From NCBI GenBank assembly GCA_009859145.1, contig VRVR01000014.1, forward strand, positions 335,373 to 392,309: a DNA stretch of 56,937 bases, in the 5' to 3' direction. How positions within the stretch are numbered: the stretch's first letter is position 1; every line of letters starts with the position of its first letter. Of this stretch, positions 5,533 to 54,314 are shown in pieces. Source of the DNA: Andalucia godoyi And28. Its lineage: Eukaryota; Protista; Jakobida. The position numbers and the translations under genes were made by a program. The notes under the pieces are model-generated. The model did not search any database, was not told the origin of the DNA, and was given only the letters and a program-made list of their open reading frames with translations.

Positions 5533-5713
5533 ACAAATGAAACGACAACAGACAAAGGAAAACGTAGAATTAAAAAAAGCAATAAGCAAAAAGCAGAAAA
5601 ACAAAACAAAACCAAACCAAACTAAAAAACAAAAACAAAAACAAAAACAAAAAAAACGCGAGAATTCAAATATAAGAAACACGGAGGAGAGGAAGCGGAG
5701 AAGGGTAAAAACT

Positions 5714-7465
5714 TCAAGCCGCAACAGTGTCCCAGAATGGACACACGTCATTTCCAAGGCCAGTTTCAACAGACAGTGGAAGTGTGATGTCGTACGTGGT
5801 AGCCTGGCTGTCATACAACGGCCAGCGAACACCCAGTCCGGACGGCTGGTTGGGATCTGCGGACTTTGCAAAGTTCGCCCACGCTGTTCCAAACGCGCTT
5901 GCAACCGCCTTGTCATCCTTGCTAAACGCACCAATGACAGGGGGCCACGCATTTCCAAAGACGAACACGAGTTCGGAGGCGTGGAAATCTCCGAGAACGT
6001 CCCAGAGGATGTTCTTTCTCGGATATGTAAACTGGTAAGAGTAGACCGGCACAAACTCTGCGAGCGAACGCAGTGCTCGTCGAGCCGCACATAAGAAGAA
6101 GTAATCCCGGAACACTGCCTGTGCACGGGCAACTTGATTTCCATATTTCTCGAGCGGGTATTGAGCAAGCACGTCTTCTGTGATGGATTCGTTGAAGAAA
6201 TGCGCAATGAGCAATTCCAAAGAGTGCTCATTGTAAGGGAACATCACACCTTTGACGATGATGGGCATTACTGGTAAAAAGATGGATCCTTCTTCCTTGT
6301 TTGTTCCCATGATAATCGGGACCTTGTTGAACTTTCCGCTGCGCACCAAGTTGAGTGGCAAATCCGGAAGTCCGTCTTGCGACCCGTCAATCGTGGGGCC
6401 GAAAGGCATGACCGGGAAGAGGGCAGGCAAGTAGTCGCTGAGCTTTCCGAGCTGCGGATATGCGGCAAGCATGACTTCGGGGTAGTTCACGAATGTGTCC
6501 CAGTTGACTGCGTCTGCCGTCTGCCCCGGCCCAAGAACGGTGACATGTCCTTCAAACAGCTGACCAACCGTCTTTCCTCGCAAGCAACTCAGCAGCTGCG
6601 GACCTTCACGCGGGCATCCCCTCGCTTCTGCCCAGTCCCGGGAAAACTGCACGGAATTCTCCCACGTGACAAAGAACTGCGGCGCATCAAAGGTTCCCGA
6701 TTCAACAATCGCCTTCTGGAACAGTCCCGCAGAAGCAGGCGATGCAACGTGGTACGCAACAGAGAAGCCGCCTGCCGATTCGCCCGAGATGGTGACCTTT
6801 CCATTATCACCACCAAACGCCGAGATCGCATTGTGGACAAACCGAAGAGCCATTCGCTGATCCTGGACTCCGTAGTTCCCCGTCGACCCGGACTCAGCAA
6901 GCAGCTCGGGCAACGCAAGGAACCCGAGTGCCGACAGCCGATAATTATGCGTAACGACAATGATGTTCTGCGCATCCGCAAGATTTGCACCGTCATACAG
7001 CCCAAACTCGAATCCGTCCCCCAGCACATATCCGCCTCCATAAATCCAAAACAGCGTCGACAGCGACCCGGCACTCGGGAAAGAGCCGTCAGCATTCAGC
7101 GGTACCCAAACGTTCAGATACAGGCAGTCTTCAACCCCCGCAGTAATGTATTTCCCAAGATGCAGGTTCAGCTGCGGACACGGCATCCGCGCAACCAAAT
7201 CGCCCTTCTCCTCCGTCCACGTGCTCACACCAACAGTCGGCTTCAGCCGAAGCTCGCCTACTGGTGGCTGCGCAAACGGAATCCCCAGGAACGACACGAC
7301 GCGCGACCCCGGCGCACGGTACCCCCGAACGGGTCCGTACGGAGTGCTTACCTTGTACTCCACCTGCGACTCTGCTGCATCCACACCGCCGCTCATCAAC
7401 ACTCCTCCAAACAACACCAGCGAAAACATCATCAACGACAACGACAACGACGGACCCTTGCTCAT
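5714..7465 (-). CDS. Type-B carboxylesterase/lipase (cholinesterase-like), probably secreted (583 aa)
   Basis: FLGIPFAQPPVGELR, EDCLYLNVW, WIYGGGY, nucleophile GESAG, EEG acid, GDFHASEL His motif. Hydrophobic signal after MSKG. First ATG at 7465. Confidence 0.92.
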   Translation of the reverse strand: MSKGPSLSLSLMMFSLVLFGGVLMSGGVDAAESQVEYKVSTPYGPVRGYRAPGSRVVSFLGIPFAQPPVGELRLKPTVGVSTWTEEKGDLVARMPCPQLNLHLGKYITAGVEDCLYLNVWVPLNADGSFPSAGSLSTLFWIYGGGYVLGDGFEFGLYDGANLADAQNIIVVTHNYRLSALGFLALPELLAESGSTGNYGVQDQRMALRFVHNAISAFGGDNGKVTISGESAGGFSVAYHVASPASAGLFQKAIVESGTFDAPQFFVTWENSVQFSRDWAEARGCPREGPQLLSCLRGKTVGQLFEGHVTVLGPGQTADAVNWDTFVNYPEVMLAAYPQLGKLSDYLPALFPVMPFGPTIDGSQDGLPDLPLNLVRSGKFNKVPIIMGTNKEEGSIFLPVMPIIVKGVMFPYNEHSLELLIAHFFNESITEDVLAQYPLEKYGNQVARAQAVFRDYFFLCAARRALRSLAEFVPVYSYQFTYPRKNILWDVLGDFHASELVFVFGNAWPPVIGAFSKDDKAVASAFGTAWANFAKSADPNQPSGLGVRWPLYDSQATTYDITLPLSVETGLGNDVCPFWDTVAA

Positions 7466-7580
7466 CCTCGAAACACGCACGCACACAGATTCACGCAATC
7501 TCTCTCTTATCAATCCCAAGGAAACCTCCAATGTTTTTTAACACTTACAAACAGTAACAAAGAAAACAAAACCAAAAAAA

Positions 7581-7589
7581 TATACATAT

Positions 7590-7622
<33 letters not shown>
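7581..7622. repeat. (CA)n/(TA)n microsatellite between the divergent esterase and TAM41 genes
   Basis: tatacatata-(ca)5-(ta)11 read directly. Confidence 0.9.
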
Positions 7623-7948
7623 GAGGTATGTTTATAACATTCAAACGCCATTTAATTAATGAAATTGGATTCTCCGCTTGTCCCCCACTACGACTGGTGA
7701 GCAAGAAAGGCAAGAAGCAACAGGAAGTTGCACTTCAACTTATGGACTATGAAAGCTTTCATTGTGTGTTGAAACTGTGTATTGGTCTTTTGTATCTATT
7801 GGTTTTGTATTTATTGGTTTTCACTTGTACGAGTTTTAATAACGAGAATGTTTTAATTATAATTATTGAGTTATTTATCATTTCTTAATAAATATATTTA
7901 TTTTTGAATTCTTGCAAGTAGCGCGCTCAGACTGTGGTTGAGAGACTG

Positions 7949-9046: not shown

Positions 9047-9423
9047 ATGTTAAGGATGTGTGTGTGTGGAAGAACAAGCTTTGCATTCTGTCGTTGGCTG
9101 GTCCGTGTGTCGCTTTTCTCAATATGGCCATGTTGCAGACCTTTCCCCGAATGCTCCATTAAATAAAAAGAGGAGTTCTGGGTTCGTTCGACGGTGCCTG
9201 CCGTAGGGGAAGACTATCTCTCTATCTCTCTATGCAAAATGTGCGAAACTTCCTCAGTCCCAATGGTGGTGTATTCACGCTCAAGCAGCCGTTGACGCGT
9301 GGCGAGGTACTGAGGACGGCGACGCACAGAGACAAACGGGCGATCTGAGCGGGCACCGAAAATCTCGGGGAGGGAGGGATTGGCGTGGCGAAGTACGAAA
9401 CAGCGGCACAGCGGATCATTTAG

Positions 9424-10932
9424 ATGGATGCATTTCGAGCTGCGGAAAAGCTGTATCGGTCCGCGTCGTCATTGGAGGACCGCTACATCGCGACGCACTT
9501 TCCGAAGCTTGCGTTTGAGCGCGAACCCATGGGGGTTTCAGACATGTCGATTCCAAAGGTGCGCTGCAGTGCTCGCTTTCCGGGGCTGTACATTGTGCGA
9601 AACGCACTGAGTCCGTCTGCGCAATTGGAGATCATGAAGAAAGCGTTTATGGAGTACTGCAGTCCTCCGAACGACACCAACCTGCATGCTCATTACAGCA
9701 GCGACAGGCTCCAGCAGCTGTGGAAGGATGCATGCGATGTGTATGCGTGCGAGAAGAAGGAGAAAGGGCAAATCCACGATGCGTCGAAGCGGCCCTTGCT
9801 GGAGCTCTTGCGATGGTCTACTCTTGGGATCCGGTACGATTGGTCCGCAAGGAAGTACGATTTCGGATCGAACGACCGTCAGTTTCCTGCCGATGTCGCT
9901 GCACTCTGCGATTCTGTCGCGAAAGTGTGTCTTGGGAACGATTTCACATTCCGGGCAGAGGCAGGGATCATGAATTACTACGTGCCCAATTCGCAGCTTT
10001 GTGGACACGTCGACGATGCAGAACTGGCCTTTGACGCCCCGATTGTTTCTCTATCTCTTGGCAACTCGTGCATCTTTCTTGCAGGCGGCGACTCGAAGGA
10101 TGTTGAGCCGGATGCATTCGTCCTTCGGTCTGGTGATGCGGTTGTCATGCACGGTGCGTCACGAAGATGCTATCACGGGGTAGCAAAGATCTTTTCCGGA
10201 ACCTTGCCAGCATTCTTGCTTCCTCAGAACGTGCCAGACGACAGTAGCTGCTGCAGGAAGCTTGCAGAGTTTTGGAAGGACATGCGGATCAACGTGAATG
10301 CTCGGCAAGTGTTTCCATCTCCCGAGCCAGCGCTTCCTGTGCCGGACACGAGTGGCAAGCCCAGCGGCATAGCAGCACAACCGGGAACCCAAACCGCATC
10401 GCAGATGGCCGCTCGTTTGCAGTTGATTTCACACGACGAGGGTGGATGGTTTCGGCAGACGTATGAGACCACGGAAACGGTTTCGACCCCCGATCGGATT
10501 GATGGCGTTCGCCCGGCCATGAACACGATTTATTACATGCTTACTGGTATTCAATCCATCGGTCATTTGCATTCCAACATGTCAGATATCATGCACTACT
10601 ATCACGGTGGAAACCCGATCTTGTATGTTGTGCTGAACGAGGCGCACATGACACTGGAGCGGTTCGTGATGGGAAGCGATGCCGCGTGCGGACAGGTTTT
10701 CCAGCTTCTTGTTCCTGCGAATCTCGTCAAAGCATCCGTGTTGCTGCATGCTGACGGGTCAATTCCCACCGCAGACCGCCCTTTGGATCCTGAAGAATGG
10801 GGGCTCATATCCGAAGTTGTAGCTCCAGGATTCGACTATCGAGATCGGCAATTGCTGTGCAAACCCAGTTGCCCTGCTTCCTTCCAGCAACTGCTGCACT
10901 CCTCTGTCGGCCTCGATCTGTTTCACAAGTAA
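9424..10932 (+). CDS. ALKBH1: ALKBH1-like Fe(II)/2OG dioxygenase fused in frame to a C-terminal Cupin_5 (DUF985) domain (502 aa)
   Basis: AlkB part: LRWSTLGIRYDWSARKY, AEAGIMNYY, GHVD, PIVSLSLG, LRSGD...YHGV, RINVNARQV. Cupin_5 part: HDEGGWFRQTY, NTIYYML, HLH...DIMHYYHGG, QLLVP, LISEVVAPGFDYRD. Confidence 0.88.
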   Translation: MDAFRAAEKLYRSASSLEDRYIATHFPKLAFEREPMGVSDMSIPKVRCSARFPGLYIVRNALSPSAQLEIMKKAFMEYCSPPNDTNLHAHYSSDRLQQLWKDACDVYACEKKEKGQIHDASKRPLLELLRWSTLGIRYDWSARKYDFGSNDRQFPADVAALCDSVAKVCLGNDFTFRAEAGIMNYYVPNSQLCGHVDDAELAFDAPIVSLSLGNSCIFLAGGDSKDVEPDAFVLRSGDAVVMHGASRRCYHGVAKIFSGTLPAFLLPQNVPDDSSCCRKLAEFWKDMRINVNARQVFPSPEPALPVPDTSGKPSGIAAQPGTQTASQMAARLQLISHDEGGWFRQTYETTETVSTPDRIDGVRPAMNTIYYMLTGIQSIGHLHSNMSDIMHYYHGGNPILYVVLNEAHMTLERFVMGSDAACGQVFQLLVPANLVKASVLLHADGSIPTADRPLDPEEWGLISEVVAPGFDYRDRQLLCKPSCPASFQQLLHSSVGLDLFHK

Positions 10933-11648
10933 GCACAGCAAGTCTGAAGCACTGTGTCCGTCTATCAGCAGCCCGTCACAGTCGATCCTTCATTCTCCCC
11001 GCATATGCACAATCTTGGATCCCAGTGTCGCCCCCCCACCCAGACACGCGACTGTTTGTTTTGCTTCGTTTTGCTTTGTTCCGAACGCCAAAAAACAAAC
11101 CAATGACAATAACAAAAAAACAAAAACGCCTTCTATTTGTTGTAAAAACGTTGACGAACGTTATGAACTACATTAACGGACTGCACGCCTACGTTATACA
11201 CTGAACATGCATAACTACAAATAGACATGCATATTCAGTCTTGCATCCCGTTGCCGGGAAGGGGATCGGCCCTGCATCGAGCGGCGTAGGCGTAGGCGAA
11301 TGCGTCATCCCAGCGCACCCACGCCCATATTTGAATTAAAAAACAAAATCAACGAATGATAGAATAGATGGCTACGGATGCTGAGTTAAAGAGCGTCGAA
11401 AATGCGGAGCCTGTGTCACCGGCTGAATTTTGGCCGAGTGTGCGTAAGCATGAATTCCTGTGAAGCAAAAAACGTGCTGGTGTCGGCCAGTATTGACCGT
11501 GTCATTATTCAACGGCATATGCTCTGCTGGACATTCGTGCGTTAATTTTTGTTTCATTATGAAATAAAACAATAGTCAGCGTTTACGTTTACGTTTTAGG
11601 TGTTCTGGAGGAATATACAAATCGAACCGCACGGGACCGCACTAACGC

Positions 11649-13397
11649 ATGAGCCGTTCTGTTCTGTCCATCCATGACTTGTCTCCGGTGCAGTCTCCGT
11701 CACACGCTCTGACACCGACGGCTGGTTTGTCATTGCAGACGCGACAGGGGTCATCGAGAAAGGAGTTTGCGATGTCCTCTTCGTCGCTCCGCGAGCTGGG
11801 CAATTCATCCGCATCGTCATCCGCAGCGGCGGCGACAGCGAGAGGGACAGCGACAGGGACAGGAACGGAATCAGTGCCAGTTTCATCGTTTGGAAAAAGC
11901 TCGAGGACTGCCCAAGTACTGGATTCAGAGTTGGATCGACTTCGGTCGTTTTGGTCGGCGACTCGGAAGGACCTGTCTGTGCATGCACACCGGTTATCGA
12001 TGGAACACGAAAGAGAAAAGTCGGATGTTGAGGATGCTCGAGAAAAGCTGCAAATCGCGCTGGAGCAAAGCAAAATATATAAAGACGGCATCGAACAGTT
12101 GGAAGCAGCGCTCGCGGAGTCGAATGACAAGTGCAGACTGCATGAGATGACTCTGAAGTCCTCGAAAATGGAAAATGCTTTTCTCAGGGAACAAGTCTCT
12201 ACGCTCAAGCTGGAATTGGAGAAGACGCAGGATACGCTGGGGTCGCACATGAGCAAGTACGACATCCAGTCCTCGCAGATCGCACAGCTGATGTCCAAAC
12301 TGAAGGGGCTGTCTTCCGAAACTGCTGACAAGCTGGCGTATGCGTTGGAGAGGAATCAGGTGCTGGAGTCAGAGAATGTGGCGTTGCTTGACGAAGTGAC
12401 TCTACTGCGGCAGTCTTCTGCGGAGGGAGAGAGGTACAAACAGCAGTGCGTGACGATGGATCGTGCGATGCGCGCTTGCGAGGTGCATATGGCCCAGTCT
12501 GTGTCTGCAAAAGAGCAAGTCGGCGAACTGCGGGAAACCGTCCGAAGACTTGTTGGCATGCTTGGAAAGACAAGGGAGTTCGCTGGGTTGCTGTGGGACG
12601 GAAAGGCAGAGATTGTGTTTTTTGGAGGCGGCCATACGTCTGCCAAACGGAAGACGGTCATATCCGGTTCGGGCTCTGCAAAGTCCGAGTTCATTCGGTC
12701 CGATTGGCTTCCTGCAGAAGCTCTCAATGCACTTCGAAGGTTCCGTGATCAGCATATGCCGAATGTCTCTGTGTCCGCGTTTTCCGAGATGCTAACGTCG
12801 CTGAATCAGGCGTTCTTGGAGCGAGAGTCGCACTCTGTCAGCCGCCTGAAGCACAAGTACAAGCAGCAAATATTGGATCTGAAGAGACAAGTGGGCCAGC
12901 GGCAGCCGTATTCTTCTGTCGTCTACGAGGAACGAATTCAACATTTGAAAAAGGAACTCGAGGAATGTAAGTCTTCTCTTGATGTGCGTGGAGACCAGAG
13001 GGAATGGTTGCACAAGTTTGGCAAGCTGATTGAGAGAATCCAGAAGCTGGAAAAGGACAATGAATTTCTGGAAGAGCAGCTGCAGTCCCATCGTGCTCCG
13101 GAAGTTGAACTGCAAGACTGGGCATACGCCGACGTAGCCTTGAACCGGGTTCTCACGGAATTTGCAGCTGCGCGGAAGCATTTTGCCGAGTACGACCCTG
13201 TCCAATCACAAATCTCTGAGATTGTGTCGCAGCTCGAGCACTTGGTGTCGTTTGTGCGTGTGCGGCGGTCTGATCGAGACGGTGCGCTTTGCAGTTCAAG
13301 AAGAATCGAGAGCGCGAGTCGTAGCAATACCGACGACGATCAGAACGGTCAGTCGGAGGGTTCGGAGGGCAGCAGCCACGATCTGTCAGATGAATAG
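11649..13397 (+). CDS. Long coiled-coil protein of unknown function (582 aa)
   Basis: Long ORF from ATG with heptad-like E/K/L/Q-rich segments and Ser-rich termini. No family recognised. Confidence 0.7.
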   Translation: MSRSVLSIHDLSPVQSPSHALTPTAGLSLQTRQGSSRKEFAMSSSSLRELGNSSASSSAAAATARGTATGTGTESVPVSSFGKSSRTAQVLDSELDRLRSFWSATRKDLSVHAHRLSMEHEREKSDVEDAREKLQIALEQSKIYKDGIEQLEAALAESNDKCRLHEMTLKSSKMENAFLREQVSTLKLELEKTQDTLGSHMSKYDIQSSQIAQLMSKLKGLSSETADKLAYALERNQVLESENVALLDEVTLLRQSSAEGERYKQQCVTMDRAMRACEVHMAQSVSAKEQVGELRETVRRLVGMLGKTREFAGLLWDGKAEIVFFGGGHTSAKRKTVISGSGSAKSEFIRSDWLPAEALNALRRFRDQHMPNVSVSAFSEMLTSLNQAFLERESHSVSRLKHKYKQQILDLKRQVGQRQPYSSVVYEERIQHLKKELEECKSSLDVRGDQREWLHKFGKLIERIQKLEKDNEFLEEQLQSHRAPEVELQDWAYADVALNRVLTEFAAARKHFAEYDPVQSQISEIVSQLEHLVSFVRVRRSDRDGALCSSRRIESASRSNTDDDQNGQSEGSEGSSHDLSDE

Positions 13398-21218: not shown

Positions 21219-22724
21219 ATGTGGAAAACGGTGCGGAAACTGCAGGCGTATGAAGCATTATGCTTCACGATGAATGTTTGCGCGACAGTGCGTTTTTCAT
21301 GCGGTTCTCGGCTCTCCCTCCGAGACTTGGAGTCTGCGTGGATGCGGGCGTCTCGTTTTCACCCGTATGTCCGATCTCGTGTAGAGTCTCGTGACGGCGC
21401 GCTGTGGTTTGAGTTGTTCGAGTCAGAGAGCTGTGGTCTACCGTTTCACATCAGGTGGGAAGAGTTGCCAAGCGACCTCTTTCACGATTGGCAGCCCCGG
21501 TTGAAAACAGAAGTGAACACATCTTATGAGAGCTCGACACAGACTTCGGTGCGCGTTCGCGTTTGTGCGTTTTACGACACAGTTTTGGAGGCGGAGCGGT
21601 TGCCTTCCACCATTGCTGCTCCGTTTCAATACGAAATGATAGTGTACATGAATCACGCTGGAATGGATGGACCGGGCTTGTTTGCTGTGCTACAGACCGT
21701 GATGCAAGAGTTGCAGCATCCTGGGTTGAGTGCACAGTCTACCGAGAAGAGAGTCGATGGCCTGGTGGATATTGTTGGATTGCGTCCTTCCGACACATCG
21801 AGCCTTTCGCATCCCTTTCAGTTCCCCCCGGTTTCAGAATGCGTGGATCCTATTTCTCCTGGCGAATTTGGTGTGTTTTCCCCCACGGACAATGCAAAGT
21901 CGCTGCCGCCGCCTCACACAAGTGCAGTGTGGACGTGGCTCTCAGAGTCACAGACCTCCAAGCTCCTCCAGATGGCGAAAGAGCACAGATGCACTATCCA
22001 AGGGGTCGTCTCTGTGGCAGCAATGGCCGCTGTATTATGGATGCACGAGGAGGCTTCGCGATTGGATCCGAGGCTGCAGCTCGAGGACCGCAATCGCATT
22101 CGAGACCATCCAGTCTGTTTTGTGTCTCAAGTGCCCTGCAACATGCGCTCCTTTGTTGATCCGCCCGTGTCTCCTGGCGTATGTGTTTGTGCGTCTGCAG
22201 GCCTTGTTTGGCCGCAGACCCTCTGCAAGGACACTCGTTTATGGGATGCTTCTGCGGAGGCTTCGTCCAGTATCAAGACGGTTGCTCTGTCAAAGTGCGG
22301 CTTTGTCTTTTGGGAGAATATCGAAACCTCGCGCTGGCATATGATGCAGCCGTACGCTGTGATGACATCTAGTATTGGTGCGTATTCTCTTCTCTCACCG
22401 CCTCCGCAGGATGACCAAGAGGAGTGTTTGCGGGTTTTGGAAGACGAGGATTCCATTGACTCCGCGGAGTCCAGCGCATCTGGTCCACGCAGCTTACGAA
22501 TTGCAGATGTATTCTTGCTGGGTGGACTGGAAGCCGTGCCTGAAAAGGCCGCGGGCACAATGGTCCATGTCTACACCGTCAACAAGCAGCTGCGGATTAC
22601 CTGTGCCTACACCACGGGCGGGGTACCAGATGCAGCTGGAGGAGCATTTTCCCGGAAGCTGGTGTCTGCAATTCTGCAAATGATGGAATGTGGTTCCACC
22701 ACCTTTGAAGATGTGATGCAGTAA
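21219..22724 (+). CDS. CoA-dependent acyltransferase (condensation-domain/PapA5/alcohol acetyltransferase-like) (501 aa)
   Basis: N-terminal RKLQAYE, catalytic NHAGMDG (HxxxDG), LSESQTSKLLQMAKEHRCTIQGVV, VPCNMR, SSIG, VNKQLRIT. Confidence 0.75.
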   Translation: MWKTVRKLQAYEALCFTMNVCATVRFSCGSRLSLRDLESAWMRASRFHPYVRSRVESRDGALWFELFESESCGLPFHIRWEELPSDLFHDWQPRLKTEVNTSYESSTQTSVRVRVCAFYDTVLEAERLPSTIAAPFQYEMIVYMNHAGMDGPGLFAVLQTVMQELQHPGLSAQSTEKRVDGLVDIVGLRPSDTSSLSHPFQFPPVSECVDPISPGEFGVFSPTDNAKSLPPPHTSAVWTWLSESQTSKLLQMAKEHRCTIQGVVSVAAMAAVLWMHEEASRLDPRLQLEDRNRIRDHPVCFVSQVPCNMRSFVDPPVSPGVCVCASAGLVWPQTLCKDTRLWDASAEASSSIKTVALSKCGFVFWENIETSRWHMMQPYAVMTSSIGAYSLLSPPPQDDQEECLRVLEDEDSIDSAESSASGPRSLRIADVFLLGGLEAVPEKAAGTMVHVYTVNKQLRITCAYTTGGVPDAAGGAFSRKLVSAILQMMECGSTTFEDVMQ

Positions 22725-22920
22725 TTTAAAAACAAATGAAATAAATAACACGAGAAGCGCTCGCTCAATATGCGTCGCCACCTCCTTCGACGCGAACATA
22801 AAGACAGACGCACGGCGGAGGGCGAGAAAGAAAGAAAGGGAAAAGGGGGGGGGGGGGGGGAGGAAAAAACACAACAAAACCAAACCAGAGCACGATTTAC
22901 AAACAGATGAAACGACCTTT

Positions 22921-33661: not shown

Positions 33662-34333
33662 TCTTTGGTTGCCACTTTTTTTCCCATGTCGTGTGTACTT
33701 CAGCGTGAATCTGTATAAATCGATCGCATTTTCTTGTTGTCTCCACCAATTTGAGCACGAATTATTTATTTTTTCTTCTTTTATTTCTGTTTCAAAAAAA
33801 AAAAAAAAAAGAAAAAAGAAAAAAGAAGAAGAACCGAACAGCGAGACAGCACACGCGCTGGATTACGGATTAAAACCGTGAGGATCGCAACCACGACTCC
33901 GAAACACGGTAGGCAACAGCGAGTTTACCGCAATGATCGTGGGTGCCAGACAGTGACCTCCATCTCCATCCGTTATCCGTGTAGAAGCTGGTTGTGCGGC
34001 ATTGTCGCGTGTCAACTGGCAATGAAGAATTTGACATTTCTGCCGCTCTCCTGCCAATTGCCTGTTTGCTTGGCAAGACGACGACTTCCGAGTTCCATGC
34101 GATCTCGCTGCATTTCCCAGCAGCCATCAAACCAAAAGAAAACCGAAATGCATCCCGGGCCACCAGGAGATCGTCGCCACATTTAACTATAATATTCAGC
34201 CGTCTTTTCAGCGAACGCAGCAACCCTTCAAACCATGATATCATGCTTGGACTGCCACTCCTCCACTTTCTTCCACGGAAACGCAGTCTTCTGTTTGAGA
34301 TGAAGGGGCTCACAGATTCTGTCCAGCTCTTCG

Positions 34334-46544: not shown

Positions 46545-48205
46545 TTTAAGATGCAGAAAGATGCTCAACAACTATTTTAAAATCCTTTTTTGTTTGTTTT
46601 TTTTCAATTTGGTCACAGCACAGAACAACACCAAAGAAAACGCAGTGCACAACTGTTTTTCAATCTTACTTTTTTTCCATGCGCGGAATTTCGGACGCAT
46701 GTTTTTTCCAGGTGCTTTCCGTTTTGCTGGAGTACAAATTTCAATACCACCTGTTCTGCCATGACAAAATTGCCTTTCAGGGAAGAAGTTTATCAAGAAA
46801 GGAATGTTCGGAGAAATGGGGAAATTCTGGTGGATGCCTTCCGGAGGAAGGCGAGGGTTCGTATGCAACCAGCGGATGCAGTTTCGCTTCGTGATTGCTC
46901 GCACACGGTCATCGGGGACCCTGCATGTCGGCGGCATTTTGGCTGTCCCCCTCCGCTTGTCCATCCGTTCCGCCCGCTTCCTTGTCCTTTCCTGACTTTG
47001 CCAAATGCGGACGCTTCGTGTTATTCGCAAACATCGAACGTTACTTGGTACAAGATTTGCTGCAAGCCCCCCTTTCTCTGTCGCAAACCGGGTTGTGTAC
47101 GCTGCGATATCAATCAATCATTGGGATGTTTTCCCTGCACGCCTTTCAACAGTTGTTTTTAAATAATTAATTAATTACTACTTGAAATAATAATATTATT
47201 TTAATGCACACACAATCAACAACACGCATTGAGAAATACAAGACGGTGGCAGGAGCACGCACAAAAAGACTTTGGAGAGATGCGCCATAAGACTAAACCA
47301 AACAAACAAGCAATCCACTCAATCTCAGCACGCAGAGAAATTCCCAAGAAGCAGGCAGATGAAGGCCCGCTGGATTCAACGATAATATGTGGCATCCACG
47401 GATACACACAGTTGGGAAAAAAGGCGACGCGAACATTCAGTACCTGTGAATGAAGAGGTTTGCAAATCATTTTGCATTGTTAAACGTTCGGAGGACAGGA
47501 TTTTTGGAGATCAAGTTCGTCCAAAGTTGAAGCGATTTCCAACTGTTTCGTCACAATGATAAGGGGGCGCAGGAACGCCTCCACAAATCAAAAGACAAAC
47601 ACCGAAAAAGACAGGAGTTTCGAGACCGAGCTGGAAGATTTCACTGGCGAACAGACACTTTCCTAGTTGGCACGCAGATTCATTCAGCAGACTATATCCA
47701 AACTGTCCGGAAAAAGGTCTTGTTTATCAGCTGAACGGAAACAAGAAACGTCAACGAAGTCATCAATTGAAAGAGCTCACACCAGAATTTGTTCAGTACG
47801 GAGATTCTCGTTGGATCTGCTGGTGGTGGGAGCTTCTCGCCTCCGTTCCCTCTCACTTTCGTACAATCTGTATCAAGACGGATTTCTCTTGCACATGTGC
47901 AACTATCTCAAGGAACGGGGGGGTTTTGTGTCCTTCTGGCATCGAAGTTGGAAGCATTTCACCTTTCGGGAATTCCATCCACACATACACGTCATCGAAC
48001 GGTGAAGCATGTCGACCATTTTTCCAGAAGCCGTTTTCTCGAAAAGAAAGCACAACCTTTCTACACACGCCGGAAATGACATTCGTCTGGGATTGCTCGA
48101 TTGCCCGGAGACGCGGAGGGCGTCCGCAATAAGCACTACATTGGAAAAAGACAACAAACAACTGAACCCAGAAGTCCAAAAACCCCCCACTCCATCCATC
48201 CTAGT

Positions 48206-51441: not shown

Positions 51442-53061
51442 ATGCCTCCGCTACCCGAAGACCACTTCCCAGAGCTCAGCCATGCCACTCTAACAGATTT
51501 CATGTCGAAATCGCAGAGACTGCGTCATCAAAAGCAAGAGAAACGAAACAGGGAAACAGCTGCAAAAGCAGAGCTGGCGTACAAAGCCAGGGAGGCGGCC
51601 GTCCAATCCGGGGTCCGCCACTTTTTAATGAAAGTGGCTGTTGACACCAGCGTGGAACAGAAAGAGGAAGATAAGGAAGGCGAGGAACGGCATTCTGGTG
51701 AAGAGAATAAAGAAAATGCGAATGCAGTGGCGCAGCATCGGCAACCGAGGGACACCATCTGCCAGAGAGACAAGGAAGTTGTCTGGATCAGCATGCGGAC
51801 CAAGACATCCACGTTGCGCGATCTTGCGGCAGTATTGAATCACAAGGAAGCGGCTCTGTACCAGACATATCACCGCGTAGAAAAGCGTGCGAAACGCGGA
51901 GAAGATGCGCTTCAGCCGCTCGCACATGGAGCGATGAATCCCAAATGCCGACGACCTCGACTGCTTTCTGATGACCAGCTTCTTTGGGCAGCGCAGCACC
52001 TGGTAATCGACAACACTCTCCACTACAGAGATCTAATGGGAATGATGCAGAAGCAGTTTCCGGAACTGGAACAGCACAACCTGGAAAACGGAGCTGCAGT
52101 GCTGCAGCACTGGATGCATGTGCATCTGGGATTCCGAGCAGCCGACTTCTATCCTCTCCCACTTAGCAGAAATTTGCCGAGGATTATCGATGCAAGGTAC
52201 CAGTACGCAAAGATGATGTCGACTGTGAAACGCGCAGCGTACGACAATGCAATACTCATCGACGAGGCTCCTTTCAATGTTTGCGTGCTGCCAAACAAAG
52301 GCCTCAGTGTGAAAGGGTGCAGTCCGCTGGTGCCGATTGGAAAGATCGATCTTCCAAACATTTCTGCAATCGTGGCAGTGAACAAAGAGAGGATGATGTA
52401 TTTCGAGTGCTACGACGGCAGAGTGAAAGCACAGACATACGCGGATTTTCTCAGACATCTCTTCGCCGAGTTGCAGAAGACTGGTGGAATTCCCAAGAAA
52501 GGCGACCCAAAACAGCTCATTGTTCAGGACAACTGTGCTATTCACAAAGCAGAAATTGTGCAATCCGAAATCCCAGAAGGCATTGAAATGTGCTTTTTGC
52601 CCGCGTATTCGCCGTTTCTCGATCCTTGTGAAGAAGTCTTCGGCACGTGGAAATGGTATTTCACCCAGATTGTCGTGAGAACTCTTCCGCAATCAAAAGA
52701 GAATCTTGTCGACTTGATATGCAAGGCCTACCGCCAAACCACATCTTCTGAAATCAAAGGTGCGTGGGGTCATTCTCTGTCGTTCTTCACAGATTCCTTG
52801 GACCGCCAGCCGGTCTCAAGGCGGAGGCTTCTTGACCATGTTCATGCAGGAGACGAAAAGGAAGCTGCAGCGATTCGCAAGTTCAGAGAACGGGGATTGG
52901 AGTACGCCCCAGAAAGCACGGGCGAATCGACGGGACTCCGCGAAGAGCATGAAGCGGTCATTGAAGAATCAGACACTGGAGAGCCACAACCAGCCGTCGC
53001 CACCATCCACGCTGCTCAGCAACATCCGGGGGAAAGAGAAGATGACGACGATGATGATTAG
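51442..53061 (+). mobile_element. IS630/Tc1-mariner DDE transposase ORF (DD33E), intact, no TIRs found (539 aa)
   Basis: LIDEAPF, NISAIVAV, YADFLRHL, IVQDNCAIHK, FLPAYSPFLDPCEEVFGTWK, upstream HTH-like segments. Confidence 0.9.
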
Positions 53062-53476
53062 CAATTCGAAAATGAATGTTCTGCTTGGCGTTGTCTCATA
53101 CGTAAAATCAGTGGCTCAGTGAAGCCAGAAAAACCAAAAATGCAAGCCACAAAGAAAATCGGCAAGGGAAAAAAAATTTGGCTTCCTAGCGTCAAGCCTT
53201 ACACTTCAAAATGGATCCCTGCCACTGTAAAATGGATCTCTTACATTCCGTGATGTTTGGGTGTACTTTTGTTTGCCAATTTGCGTTCTTCTGGTTTTCA
53301 GTTTTCGAAAGTGTTTGGGGCTCATATACAAGAATAGCGCGGGACGATCCGGCACGAACATCTAGCACAGATTGCTGCACAAGTCTGCCGTTCTGCTTAG
53401 CGCAGTCCTCGTTTTTGTGTTTTGTGCGGTTTCTACTTCCGTCTTCCCGGTTCACTGCGAACGAATTCTTTTTTAA

Positions 53477-54314
53477 ATGTCTTCCAGTACGTCAGTGTAC
53501 GTTCTTCGGTGCGAGCAGGGGCAAGTATTATGTTGGCAAATCCGCCAATGTGAGGAGTCGGATAGCAGATCACATGAAGGATTTGGGAAGTGCGTGGACT
53601 GCAATGTATCGACCGCTGGAGTTGATTGAGGTCATTTCTGGAATTGATGGAATTGATGAAGACAAGTATGTGAAAATGTATATGCAGAAATACGGCATCG
53701 AGAATGTCCGCGGTGGTTCGTATTCGCAACCGGTTCTGCAGTCATCGTCCATCGAAACATTGCATCGAGAGTTGCGCACGGCCGCAGATCGCTGTTGGAG
53801 ATGCGGTCAAGCAGGTCATTTTGTAATGGATTGCCATGTCTTCAACGAATCTTCTACATTGCATAGACCTTGTCAGCGATGTGGCCGTTATGGTGATTGC
53901 ACGGAGCAGTGCTTCGCTCGCACTGTATTCAGTGGGAATGGGTTGCAAAGATTGGAATGCACTCGGTGCGGAAGAAGAGGTCATAGTTCACTCCAATGTT
54001 TTGCGAGAATGGATAGATCCCTCAAAGGAATCGTCTGTTACCGATGTGGTCAAAAAGGCTACTATGCTACGGACTGCTTTGCTCAAGCTGGTGCTTGGCA
54101 TTCGAGTTTCTGTGATGACAAGACGTCGTTTGCGAAGAGTTCGAATTACCGTCATCGAATGCGCCGTCGGGCGGATTGGACAGCGTACCGTGCACAACAT
54201 CCCCAACAGTCGAACTTCGGATTCTCTGACCACTTTCTGTGCCCCTCAAGTTTTCTTGGAGTGCTGATTGTCTCTCTCTTGTGCTGCGTGTTCTTCAAAT
54301 TCTTGACCAAGTAA
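53477..54314 (+). CDS. GIY-YIG nuclease plus zinc-knuckle repeats (giant-virus-type architecture); apparent 1-nt frameshift at 53518-53521; hydrophobic C-terminus (about 278 aa if corrected)
   Basis: MSSSTSVYVLRCEQG in one frame joins KYYVGKS...R...H...GSAWT..YRP...DEDKYVK.YM.KYGIENVRGGSY in the ORF-track frame. Then CWRCGQAGHFVMDC, CTRCGRRGHSSLQC and two degenerate knuckles. Confidence 0.8.

Follow-up and report, generated by a model that had tools for sequence, protein, structure and literature searches.

Here, we describe a single open reading frame (ORF) of the jakobid Andalucia godoyi And28 that joins an ALKBH1-type 2-oxoglutarate (2OG)/Fe(II) dioxygenase to a Cupin_5/DUF985 domain of the yeast Cff1 (YML079w) family. 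The ORF lies in a stretch of 56,937 nucleotides (nt) of contig VRVR01000014.1 (assembly GCA_009859145.1, positions 335,373 to 392,309), hereafter called the window, and the coordinates of its features are collected in Table 1. We interpret it as a real bifunctional fusion, found in a single lineage, of two autonomous and intact enzymes for which the evidence of a shared pathway is weak, and we assign this reading a probability of about 60%. The architecture is new, and both of its parts are known.

One open reading frame carries two complete domains

The ORF is uninterrupted over 502 amino acids (aa), with both domains in one frame, and reading the window sequence through the AlkB/cupin junction revealed no in-frame stop. 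An initial annotation, made from the sequence alone, had claimed a single unbroken ORF while allowing for a missed stop codon; the 502 codons are present as claimed, with no internal stop and none concealed at the junction. It had also placed the domain limits near positions 10315 and 10400, in good agreement with AlkB homology that stops at nt 10314 and cupin homology that begins at nt 10390. An in-frame TAG abuts the ATG, which sets the N-terminus at M1 and leaves no space for a presequence unless there is an intron.

Pfam searches assigned 2OG-FeII_Oxy_2 (PF13532) to the N-terminal half (6.9e-33, 114.9 bits; profile positions 2-194, the full profile) and Cupin_5 (PF06172) to the C-terminal half (4.3e-35, 121.2 bits; profile positions 2-138 of 139). 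The curated cut-offs are 31.2 and 25 bits, respectively, and both assignments are far beyond chance. In a search against PDB sequences, ALKBH1 chains matched aa 36-307 with an E-value of 1.4e-37. The match to E. coli AlkB was much weaker (~1e-12, a difference of ~25 orders of magnitude by E-value), and no ALKBH2-8 or FTO chain was returned at E <= 0.01. Consistent with this, the top 14 Foldseek matches in the PDB were all ALKBH1 (E 1e-25 to 1e-23). By match scores, the N-terminal half thus appears nearer to ALKBH1 than to other AlkB clades. The complete ALKBH1-type domain proposed initially is therefore borne out, together with all of its motifs, namely HxD (H195/D197), the histidine of YHGV (H251), and RxxxxxR (R288/R294).

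The C-terminal half matched yeast YML079w (1xe7) with an E-value of 6e-13 over aa 324-478 in the PDB sequence search; DUF985 structures from Leishmania (3m3i) and from bacteria were matched as well. Foldseek returned 1xe7/1xe8, 3m3i, 3loi, 1yud, and 1znp for this half (E 2e-15 to 1e-11), with target template modelling (TM) scores of 0.71-0.87, and the jelly-roll fold was matched. A complete C-terminal domain of the Cff1/YML079w family, as first annotated, is therefore present. Residues E339 and H383 are the equivalents of E44 and H96 of yeast Cff1, both of which were shown by mutagenesis to be required for production of the furanone 4-hydroxy-5-methylfuran-3(2H)-one (MHF) (PMC8092285, PMC13267403). 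What the initial annotation had said of Cff1, a stand-alone cupin linked to production of MHF as a mimic of the signal AI-2, agrees with the same two papers.

The two domains are connected by a linker of Pro, Ser, Ala, and Gly residues, recognized initially as a Pro/Ser/Ala linker, which has no homology to either of the stand-alone orthologues described below. Its 25 residues match neither partner and were presumably once 3' or spacer sequence.

The architecture appears unique to the A. godoyi lineage

We searched for a second protein of this architecture in large sequence collections. A word-indexed search of 5.8 billion proteins returned 37 matches to the full-length query, each with one Pfam domain only, and the same search with the cupin half as query returned no two-domain protein. 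When 1.84 billion representatives were scanned exhaustively with phmmer, 3388 matches were obtained. Among the best 150 of these 3388, the A. godoyi protein itself scored 1175 bits, a protein with the AlkB domain only (P0002) scored 380 bits, and the rest scored 177 bits or less; no second two-domain protein was present among these 150, each of the others covering one half. Ten longer AlkB matches with unexplained extensions contained no Cupin_5. Fusions scoring below ~127 bits fall outside the best 150 of the 3388. Since an orthologous fusion would exceed 200 bits well, we conclude that these collections hold no such protein. Looking up the exact fusion protein among contigs gave no recorded match.

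Literature searches found no paper on an AlkB-DUF985 or a Cupin_5 plus 2OG-FeII_Oxy_2 architecture, and neither AlkB nor cupin is mentioned in the paper on the A. godoyi genome or in the supplements to it (PMC7050145). The fusion had been presented initially as one not known before, and neither the sequence collections nor the literature provided a second case. By these scans, the fusion appears unique to the A. godoyi lineage.

The nearest relative keeps the two genes apart

The closest relative of the AlkB half, P0002, is a stand-alone protein of 308 aa with 58% identity over 296 aa, and its C-terminus lies seven residues past the conserved RQV motif. Its gene, on a contig of 4.3 kb from JGI metagenome 3300042934, has an SNF2/ERCC6-like gene on one side and a coiled-coil gene on the other. 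The closest relative of the cupin half, P0088, is likewise a stand-alone protein (196 aa, 52% identity). It comes from another contig of the same sample, where WD40, polyprenyl-synthase, and TPR genes flank it, and it was also found in SRA run SRR35185192. Its homology to the fusion begins at aa 323 (QTASQ versus YTAQQ). Since P0088 shares with the A. godoyi cupin a loop insertion that has no bacterial counterpart, we regard it as the specific orthologue of this cupin. Neither contig carries a remnant of the partner domain.

Compared with each other and with the window, loci L001 and L002 showed GC contents of 0.49-0.51 and relative synonymous codon usage (RSCU) correlations (r) of 0.67-0.73. 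These values suggest, and do not prove, that both metagenomic contigs come from one relative. The coiled-coil gene downstream of the fusion matched the gene that follows P0002 with a pairwise E-value of 3e-7 at 23% identity, and the two share a conserved local motif, ELDRLRSFWSATRKDLS in the window versus EIDRLHSLWSGTKRDFS in the relative. Synteny on the 3' side was thus probably kept without the cupin, as far as so weak a match can tell. Eukaryotic contigs L085-L088 carry ALKBH1 genes that are more distantly related and likewise stand alone, with no cupin at their loci. In every outgroup the two genes are separate, which makes the fusion the derived state.

The uncultured relative is represented in JGI 3300042934 by two haplotypes or strains (L001/L004 and L002/L003) of 96% DNA identity, with protein identities of 52-58% to A. 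godoyi, and occurs in SRR35185192 at 99.9%. Two scans of metagenome contigs yielded no further relatives. The uncultured relative could provide a genome for comparison with jakobids.

Both halves look functional and structurally independent

A full-length AlphaFold2 model was computed from a balanced alignment (A4). Its mean predicted local distance difference test (pLDDT) score was 81.9 and its predicted TM score (pTM) 0.59; the domain blocks mostly reached ~85-96, and linker residues 302-320 fell below 50. The model suggests two independent domains on a flexible, disordered tether with no confidently predicted interface.

We then compared each half and its stand-alone orthologue with the same outgroups. 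Against 26 outgroup cupins, the fused half showed 41.7% identity and 112 bits and P0088 41.7% and 116 bits; against 18 outgroup AlkB proteins, the mean identity was 37.9% for the fused half and 35.0% for P0002. The GC content, GC content at third codon positions (GC3), and codon usage of both halves are those of the host genes. Because closeness to the outgroups equals that of the stand-alone orthologues, the catalytic residues are intact, and the composition is host-like, neither half is decaying, and both modules look functional. That the cupin is a non-functional, drifting passenger, making the protein effectively an ALKBH1 with a tail, is hardly credible to us: a single-lineage event without visible partner-specific adaptation would fit such a passenger, but E339 and H383 are conserved, the domain is modelled at the high pLDDT given above, it is no more diverged from the outgroups than P0088, and it carries no stops or frameshifts.

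Bacterial DUF985 genes cluster with purine catabolism genes

To our knowledge, no biochemical reaction has yet been defined for DUF985/Cff1, an enzyme family that is widespread. From GTDB genomes, we collected the 80 top-ranking bacterial Cupin_5 loci together with flanks of ±8 kb (1.14 Mb in total), a sample biased to Gammaproteobacteria and Vampirovibrionales. When all ORFs of these loci were searched with an ALKBH1/AlkB hidden Markov model and phmmer, no AlkB-family ORF was found (0/80). At 22 of the 80 loci, the DUF985 gene lies less than 3 kb from purine or nucleoside catabolism genes, in several gammaproteobacterial families. The genes within 3 kb include the allantoinase gene puuE (TIGR03212, 507 bits; 22 loci) and an ADGF-like gene of the adenosine-deaminase family (21 loci); a purine nucleoside permease gene (NUP, 373 bits) occurs at 14 loci and a TonB-dependent receptor gene at 16. 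The association spans Halieaceae, Alteromonadaceae, Cellvibrionaceae, and Halomonadaceae.

Yeast Cff1 has been co-crystallised with a nucleotide (PMC8092285), and pyrimidine precursor pools are altered in yeast cff1 mutants (PMC9812406). The entry of the DUF985 structure 3loi, one of the Foldseek matches, describes apo and GDP-bound forms. MHF is a pentose-derived compound. The purine clusters fit with the GDP-bound form, the nucleotide in the Cff1 crystal, the pentose origin of MHF, and the pyrimidine-pool phenotype. Together, they point to a role of the DUF985 family in small-molecule nucleoside or pentose metabolism rather than in nucleic-acid repair, and they provide an independent, testable lead to the function of this family. 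The thematic overlap with ALKBH1 (modified purines) is suggestive only.

In the bacterial set, five proteins of ~318 aa (P0030, P0031, P0032, P0038, and P0057, Actinomycetota and Acidimicrobiales proteins among them) carry a tandem double Cupin_5. A parallel is offered by the two-domain fungal Cff1 homologues mentioned in the literature (PMC13267403).

The fusion alone does not establish a shared pathway

The initial annotation had read the fusion as a Rosetta stone that links nucleic-acid base oxidation or repair to the processing of a nucleoside- or ribose-derived product, with a possible signalling output. A common pathway for the two domains seems unlikely to us. In one such scheme, the cupin might bind or process a nucleotide-, nucleoside-, or sugar-derived species connected with ALKBH1 action, such as a modified purine or a product of the apurinic/apyrimidinic (AP)-lyase activity reported for ALKBH1; alternatively, it might be a guanine-nucleotide-sensing regulator of the dioxygenase, possibly with a furanone (MHF-like) output. 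Nucleotide binding by DUF985 proteins (the GDP-bound form of 3loi and the nucleotide in the Cff1 crystal), the placement of the DUF985 gene, at 22 of 80 bacterial loci, in a cluster with PuuE, adenosine-deaminase-like, and NUP genes of purine or nucleoside catabolism, and the pyrimidine-pool phenotype of cff1 mutants together make a nucleoside theme for the cupin plausible, and both halves are intact and under constraint when fused.

Several observations argue against such a link. The scans described above revealed no recurrence in independent lineages, with one fusion among billions of proteins and none other in the best 150 of the 3388 phmmer matches. Neither a conserved neighbourhood nor a co-operon with an AlkB-family gene exists at the 80 GTDB Cupin_5 loci. 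The two genes are unlinked in the nearest relatives, lying on separate contigs in the closest one and being without a cupin at L085-L088. The model has no fixed inter-domain arrangement (pTM 0.59, disordered linker). Moreover, oxidative demethylation by AlkB frees formaldehyde and restores the base in place, which leaves no obvious sugar or nucleoside product for the cupin. The proposed link thus finds no support beyond the fusion itself.

Still less likely, in our judgement, is an adaptive tether. In this reading, a molecule derived from a purine nucleoside or nucleotide would be the substrate or the sensed ligand of the cupin, and the tether would couple this chemistry physically to the oxidation by ALKBH1 of modified tRNA or DNA bases (adenine or cytosine). 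Such a tether would fit with the GDP-bound form of 3loi, the bacterial clusters with PuuE, adenosine deaminase, and NUP genes, and pentose-derived MHF. If true, it would reveal what DUF985 enzymes do and would connect the turnover of modifications in nucleic acids with nucleoside salvage or with the release of a furanone signal. The ALKBH1-DUF985 fusion would be a useful clue if it reflected a shared function; alone, it is no basis for a pathway link.

Origin of the fusion and its products

Our preferred reading, a single-lineage fusion of two autonomous enzymes, suggests the following order of events. The ancestor would have had two separate, unlinked genes. In the Andalucia lineage, the cupin gene may have been placed between the ALKBH1 gene and the coiled-coil gene, after which the ALKBH1 stop codon and the spacer would have been lost or read through, giving an in-frame join. 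Each module most likely keeps its own chemistry. For the ALKBH1 half, we predict oxidative demethylation or oxidation of bases in tRNA or unpaired DNA; the physiological substrates of ALKBH1 are debated. For the cupin half, a metal-independent, E339/H383-dependent reaction on a pentose- or nucleoside-derived small molecule is predicted, as in Cff1-dependent MHF formation. The sole direct consequence of the fusion would then be obligatory co-expression and co-localisation at 1:1 stoichiometry. The case is a clean, datable example of how genes fuse in a protist with a compact genome, a close relative of which still has the two genes unfused.

Two other origins of the cupin half were considered and rejected. 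A recent horizontal transfer from bacteria, raised by the fact that the named best matches are bacterial, does not agree with a eukaryotic stand-alone orthologue that has the same insertion, nor with the host-like GC content and codon usage. Retroposition was raised by an A-rich tract 130-190 nt past the stop; such tracts follow many genes of the window, and no flanking direct repeats were found.

Some points weigh against the reading of a bifunctional fusion. It is the ORF alone that predicts a single 55-kDa product, and the ATG of M328, at the very beginning of the cupin homology, might serve as a second start and give a separate cupin product. The fusion occurs in one genome only, which bears on its age and selective value, and a second, stand-alone cupin copy is possible elsewhere in the genome, the analysis having covered the window. 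As for the relative, its two metagenomic contigs were put together by shared sample, GC content, RSCU (r = 0.73), and divergence, and the downstream synteny consists of a weak coiled-coil match at 23% identity.

Under a rival explanation, the ORF does not yield one protein in vivo, owing to an assembly or annotation artefact, a very recent stop loss, or two products, with an ALKBH1 transcript that ends early and a cupin made from M328. In A. godoyi, closely packed neighbour genes were often merged into single RNA-seq contigs (PMC7050145), and annotation from such contigs could miss separate transcripts; the fusion is absent from the text and supplements of the genome paper, and a product starting at M328 would hold the whole Pfam domain. 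Nevertheless, both domains lie in the same frame with no in-frame stop across the junction, and agreement between genome and RNA-seq was reported to be excellent (PMC7050145). The homology to P0088 reaches 5' of M328, indicating that M328 was not the ancestral start, and the 502-aa model is an entry in the public EukProt protein set. We regard this rival explanation as improbable and expect one polypeptide in vivo.

Genomic surroundings of the fusion

The nuclear genome of A. godoyi is ~20 Mb in size, compact, and intron-poor (PMC7050145). The window is likewise gene-dense and almost intron-free, with ~50% GC and genes on alternating strands. Its genes encode a copine, a giant Ephrin_rec_like/FG-GAP protein, a carboxylesterase, Tam41, the fusion, a coiled-coil protein, and DNA polymerase epsilon, as well as a HYDIN/CFAP-like protein, squalene epoxidase, ion transporters, an adenylate cyclase, and a DDE_3 transposase. 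No Rfam match was found in the window. Long intronless ORFs and microsatellites had at first hinted at a kinetoplastid, a reading that was rejected given the alternating strands, the even distance of polymerase epsilon from all supergroups, and a window protein that clusters with an A. godoyi entry of EukProt; by exact look-up, the proteins of the window derive from EukProt.

The 1352-aa ORF encodes a giant cysteine-rich protein of the surface type. The 503-aa ORF on the opposite strand of the carboxylesterase gene is probably spurious, a mere shadow ORF. The catalytic half of polymerase epsilon shows 55-62% identity to animals, plants, fungi, and oomycetes alike. No relatives of the 501-aa ORF were found in its 90%-identity cluster. 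The DDE_3 transposase has a paralogue of at least 90% identity in the A. godoyi proteome (EP00762_Andalucia_godoyi ANDGO_04295), and together with the 367-aa ORF that follows it may form a multi-copy mobile element. A-rich tracts of the AAAAACAAA type are ~5x over-represented in the window (55 matches versus 9.9 expected) and tend to sit just past the ends of genes, where they may serve as a signal related to the 3' end or to polyadenylation.

Table 1. Features of the fusion ORF, of the rest of the window, and of the bacterial DUF985 loci (positions are those of the window unless a locus is named)
Feature	Position	Strand	Remarks
Whole fusion ORF	9424..10932	+	502 codons plus TAA stop at 10930-10932
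In-frame TAG directly 5' of the ATG	9421..9423	+	
ALKBH1-type 2OG/Fe(II) dioxygenase half, aa 1-297	9424..10314	+	PF13532 at aa 55-294
H195-V-D197 (HxD), first two Fe(II) ligands	10006..10014	+	aligned with ALKBH1 residues
H251 in YHGV, distal Fe(II) ligand	10174..10176	+	aligned with ALKBH1 residues
R288-x5-R294, 2-oxoglutarate-binding Arg pair	10285..10305	+	aligned with ALKBH1 residues
Linker, aa 298-322, PSPEPALPVPDTSGKPSGIAAQPGT	10315..10389	+	25 residues, 67% GC
Cupin_5/DUF985 (Cff1-family) half, aa 323-502	10390..10929	+	PF06172 at aa 327-477
Internal ATG (M328), 5 residues into cupin homology	10405..10407	+	candidate alternative start
E339 in SHDEGGWF, equivalent of yeast Cff1 E44	10438..10440	+	aligned to 1xe7 chain position 44
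H383 in GHLHSN, equivalent of yeast Cff1 H96	10570..10572	+	aligned to 1xe7 chain position 96
Cupin loop insertion of 18 residues (HADGSIPTADRPLDPEEW)	10747..10800	+	common to P0088 (18-23 residues over the two proteins), not in bacterial homologues
Downstream coiled-coil gene	11649..13397	+	probable orthologue 3' of the relative's AlkB gene
Cysteine-rich giant ORF, 1352 aa	1474-5532		22 Ephrin_rec_like repeats plus FG-GAP, NCD3G-like, and TNFR-like modules
Carboxylesterase gene	5714-7531	-	
503-aa ORF antisense to carboxylesterase	6377-7888	+	no Pfam match
DNA polymerase epsilon catalytic subunit, 2325 aa	13671-20648	-	intronless
501-aa ORF	21219-22724		PapA_C (acyltransferase/condensation-like), 28.2 bits, below the cut-off of 30
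DDE_3 transposase ORF, 539 aa, then 367-aa ORF	51442-54314		367-aa ORF with GIY-YIG and CCHC zinc-knuckle matches
A-rich tracts of the AAAAACAAA type, examples	5596-5651, 11090-11124, 22727-22736, 33794-33821, 46589-46602		
DUF985-PuuE locus	L011:6876-8486		PuuE 118 nt upstream, same strand
21 other loci	L013, L015, L017, L024, L025, L028, L031, L034, L036, L037, L040, L043, L047, L050, L051, L058, L062, L064, L066, L069, L083		

Comparison with known systems

Mammalian ALKBH1 (PDB 6ie2, 6ima, 6ksf, 6l94) is the best match to the N-terminal 300 residues, with target TM-scores of 0.69-0.77, and the HxD...H triad and the RxxxxxR pair are common to both proteins. The identity is only ~30%, however, and the A. 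godoyi protein differs in beginning at the conserved N-terminal helix, without a presequence, and in its C-terminal cupin, which no ALKBH1 in the searches possesses.

Yeast Cff1/YML079w and the other DUF985 proteins of known structure (1xe7/1xe8, 3m3i, 3loi, 1yud, 1znp) resemble the cupin half of the fusion in the complete domain, the E44/H96 equivalents, and the fold. The A. godoyi cupin is nearer to bacterial members (~42-46% identity) than to the yeast protein (~31%). It is joined to a dioxygenase, whereas the others are stand-alone or, in some bacteria and fungi, tandem-duplicated, and it shares its loop insertion only with P0088.

The closest comparison is with the uncultured relative (P0002/P0219 and P0088). 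Whereas its two genes lie on separate contigs among unrelated neighbours and lack the linker, its proteins are orthologues of the two halves with the same cupin insertion, its GC content and codon usage are like those of A. godoyi, and a similar gene follows its AlkB gene.

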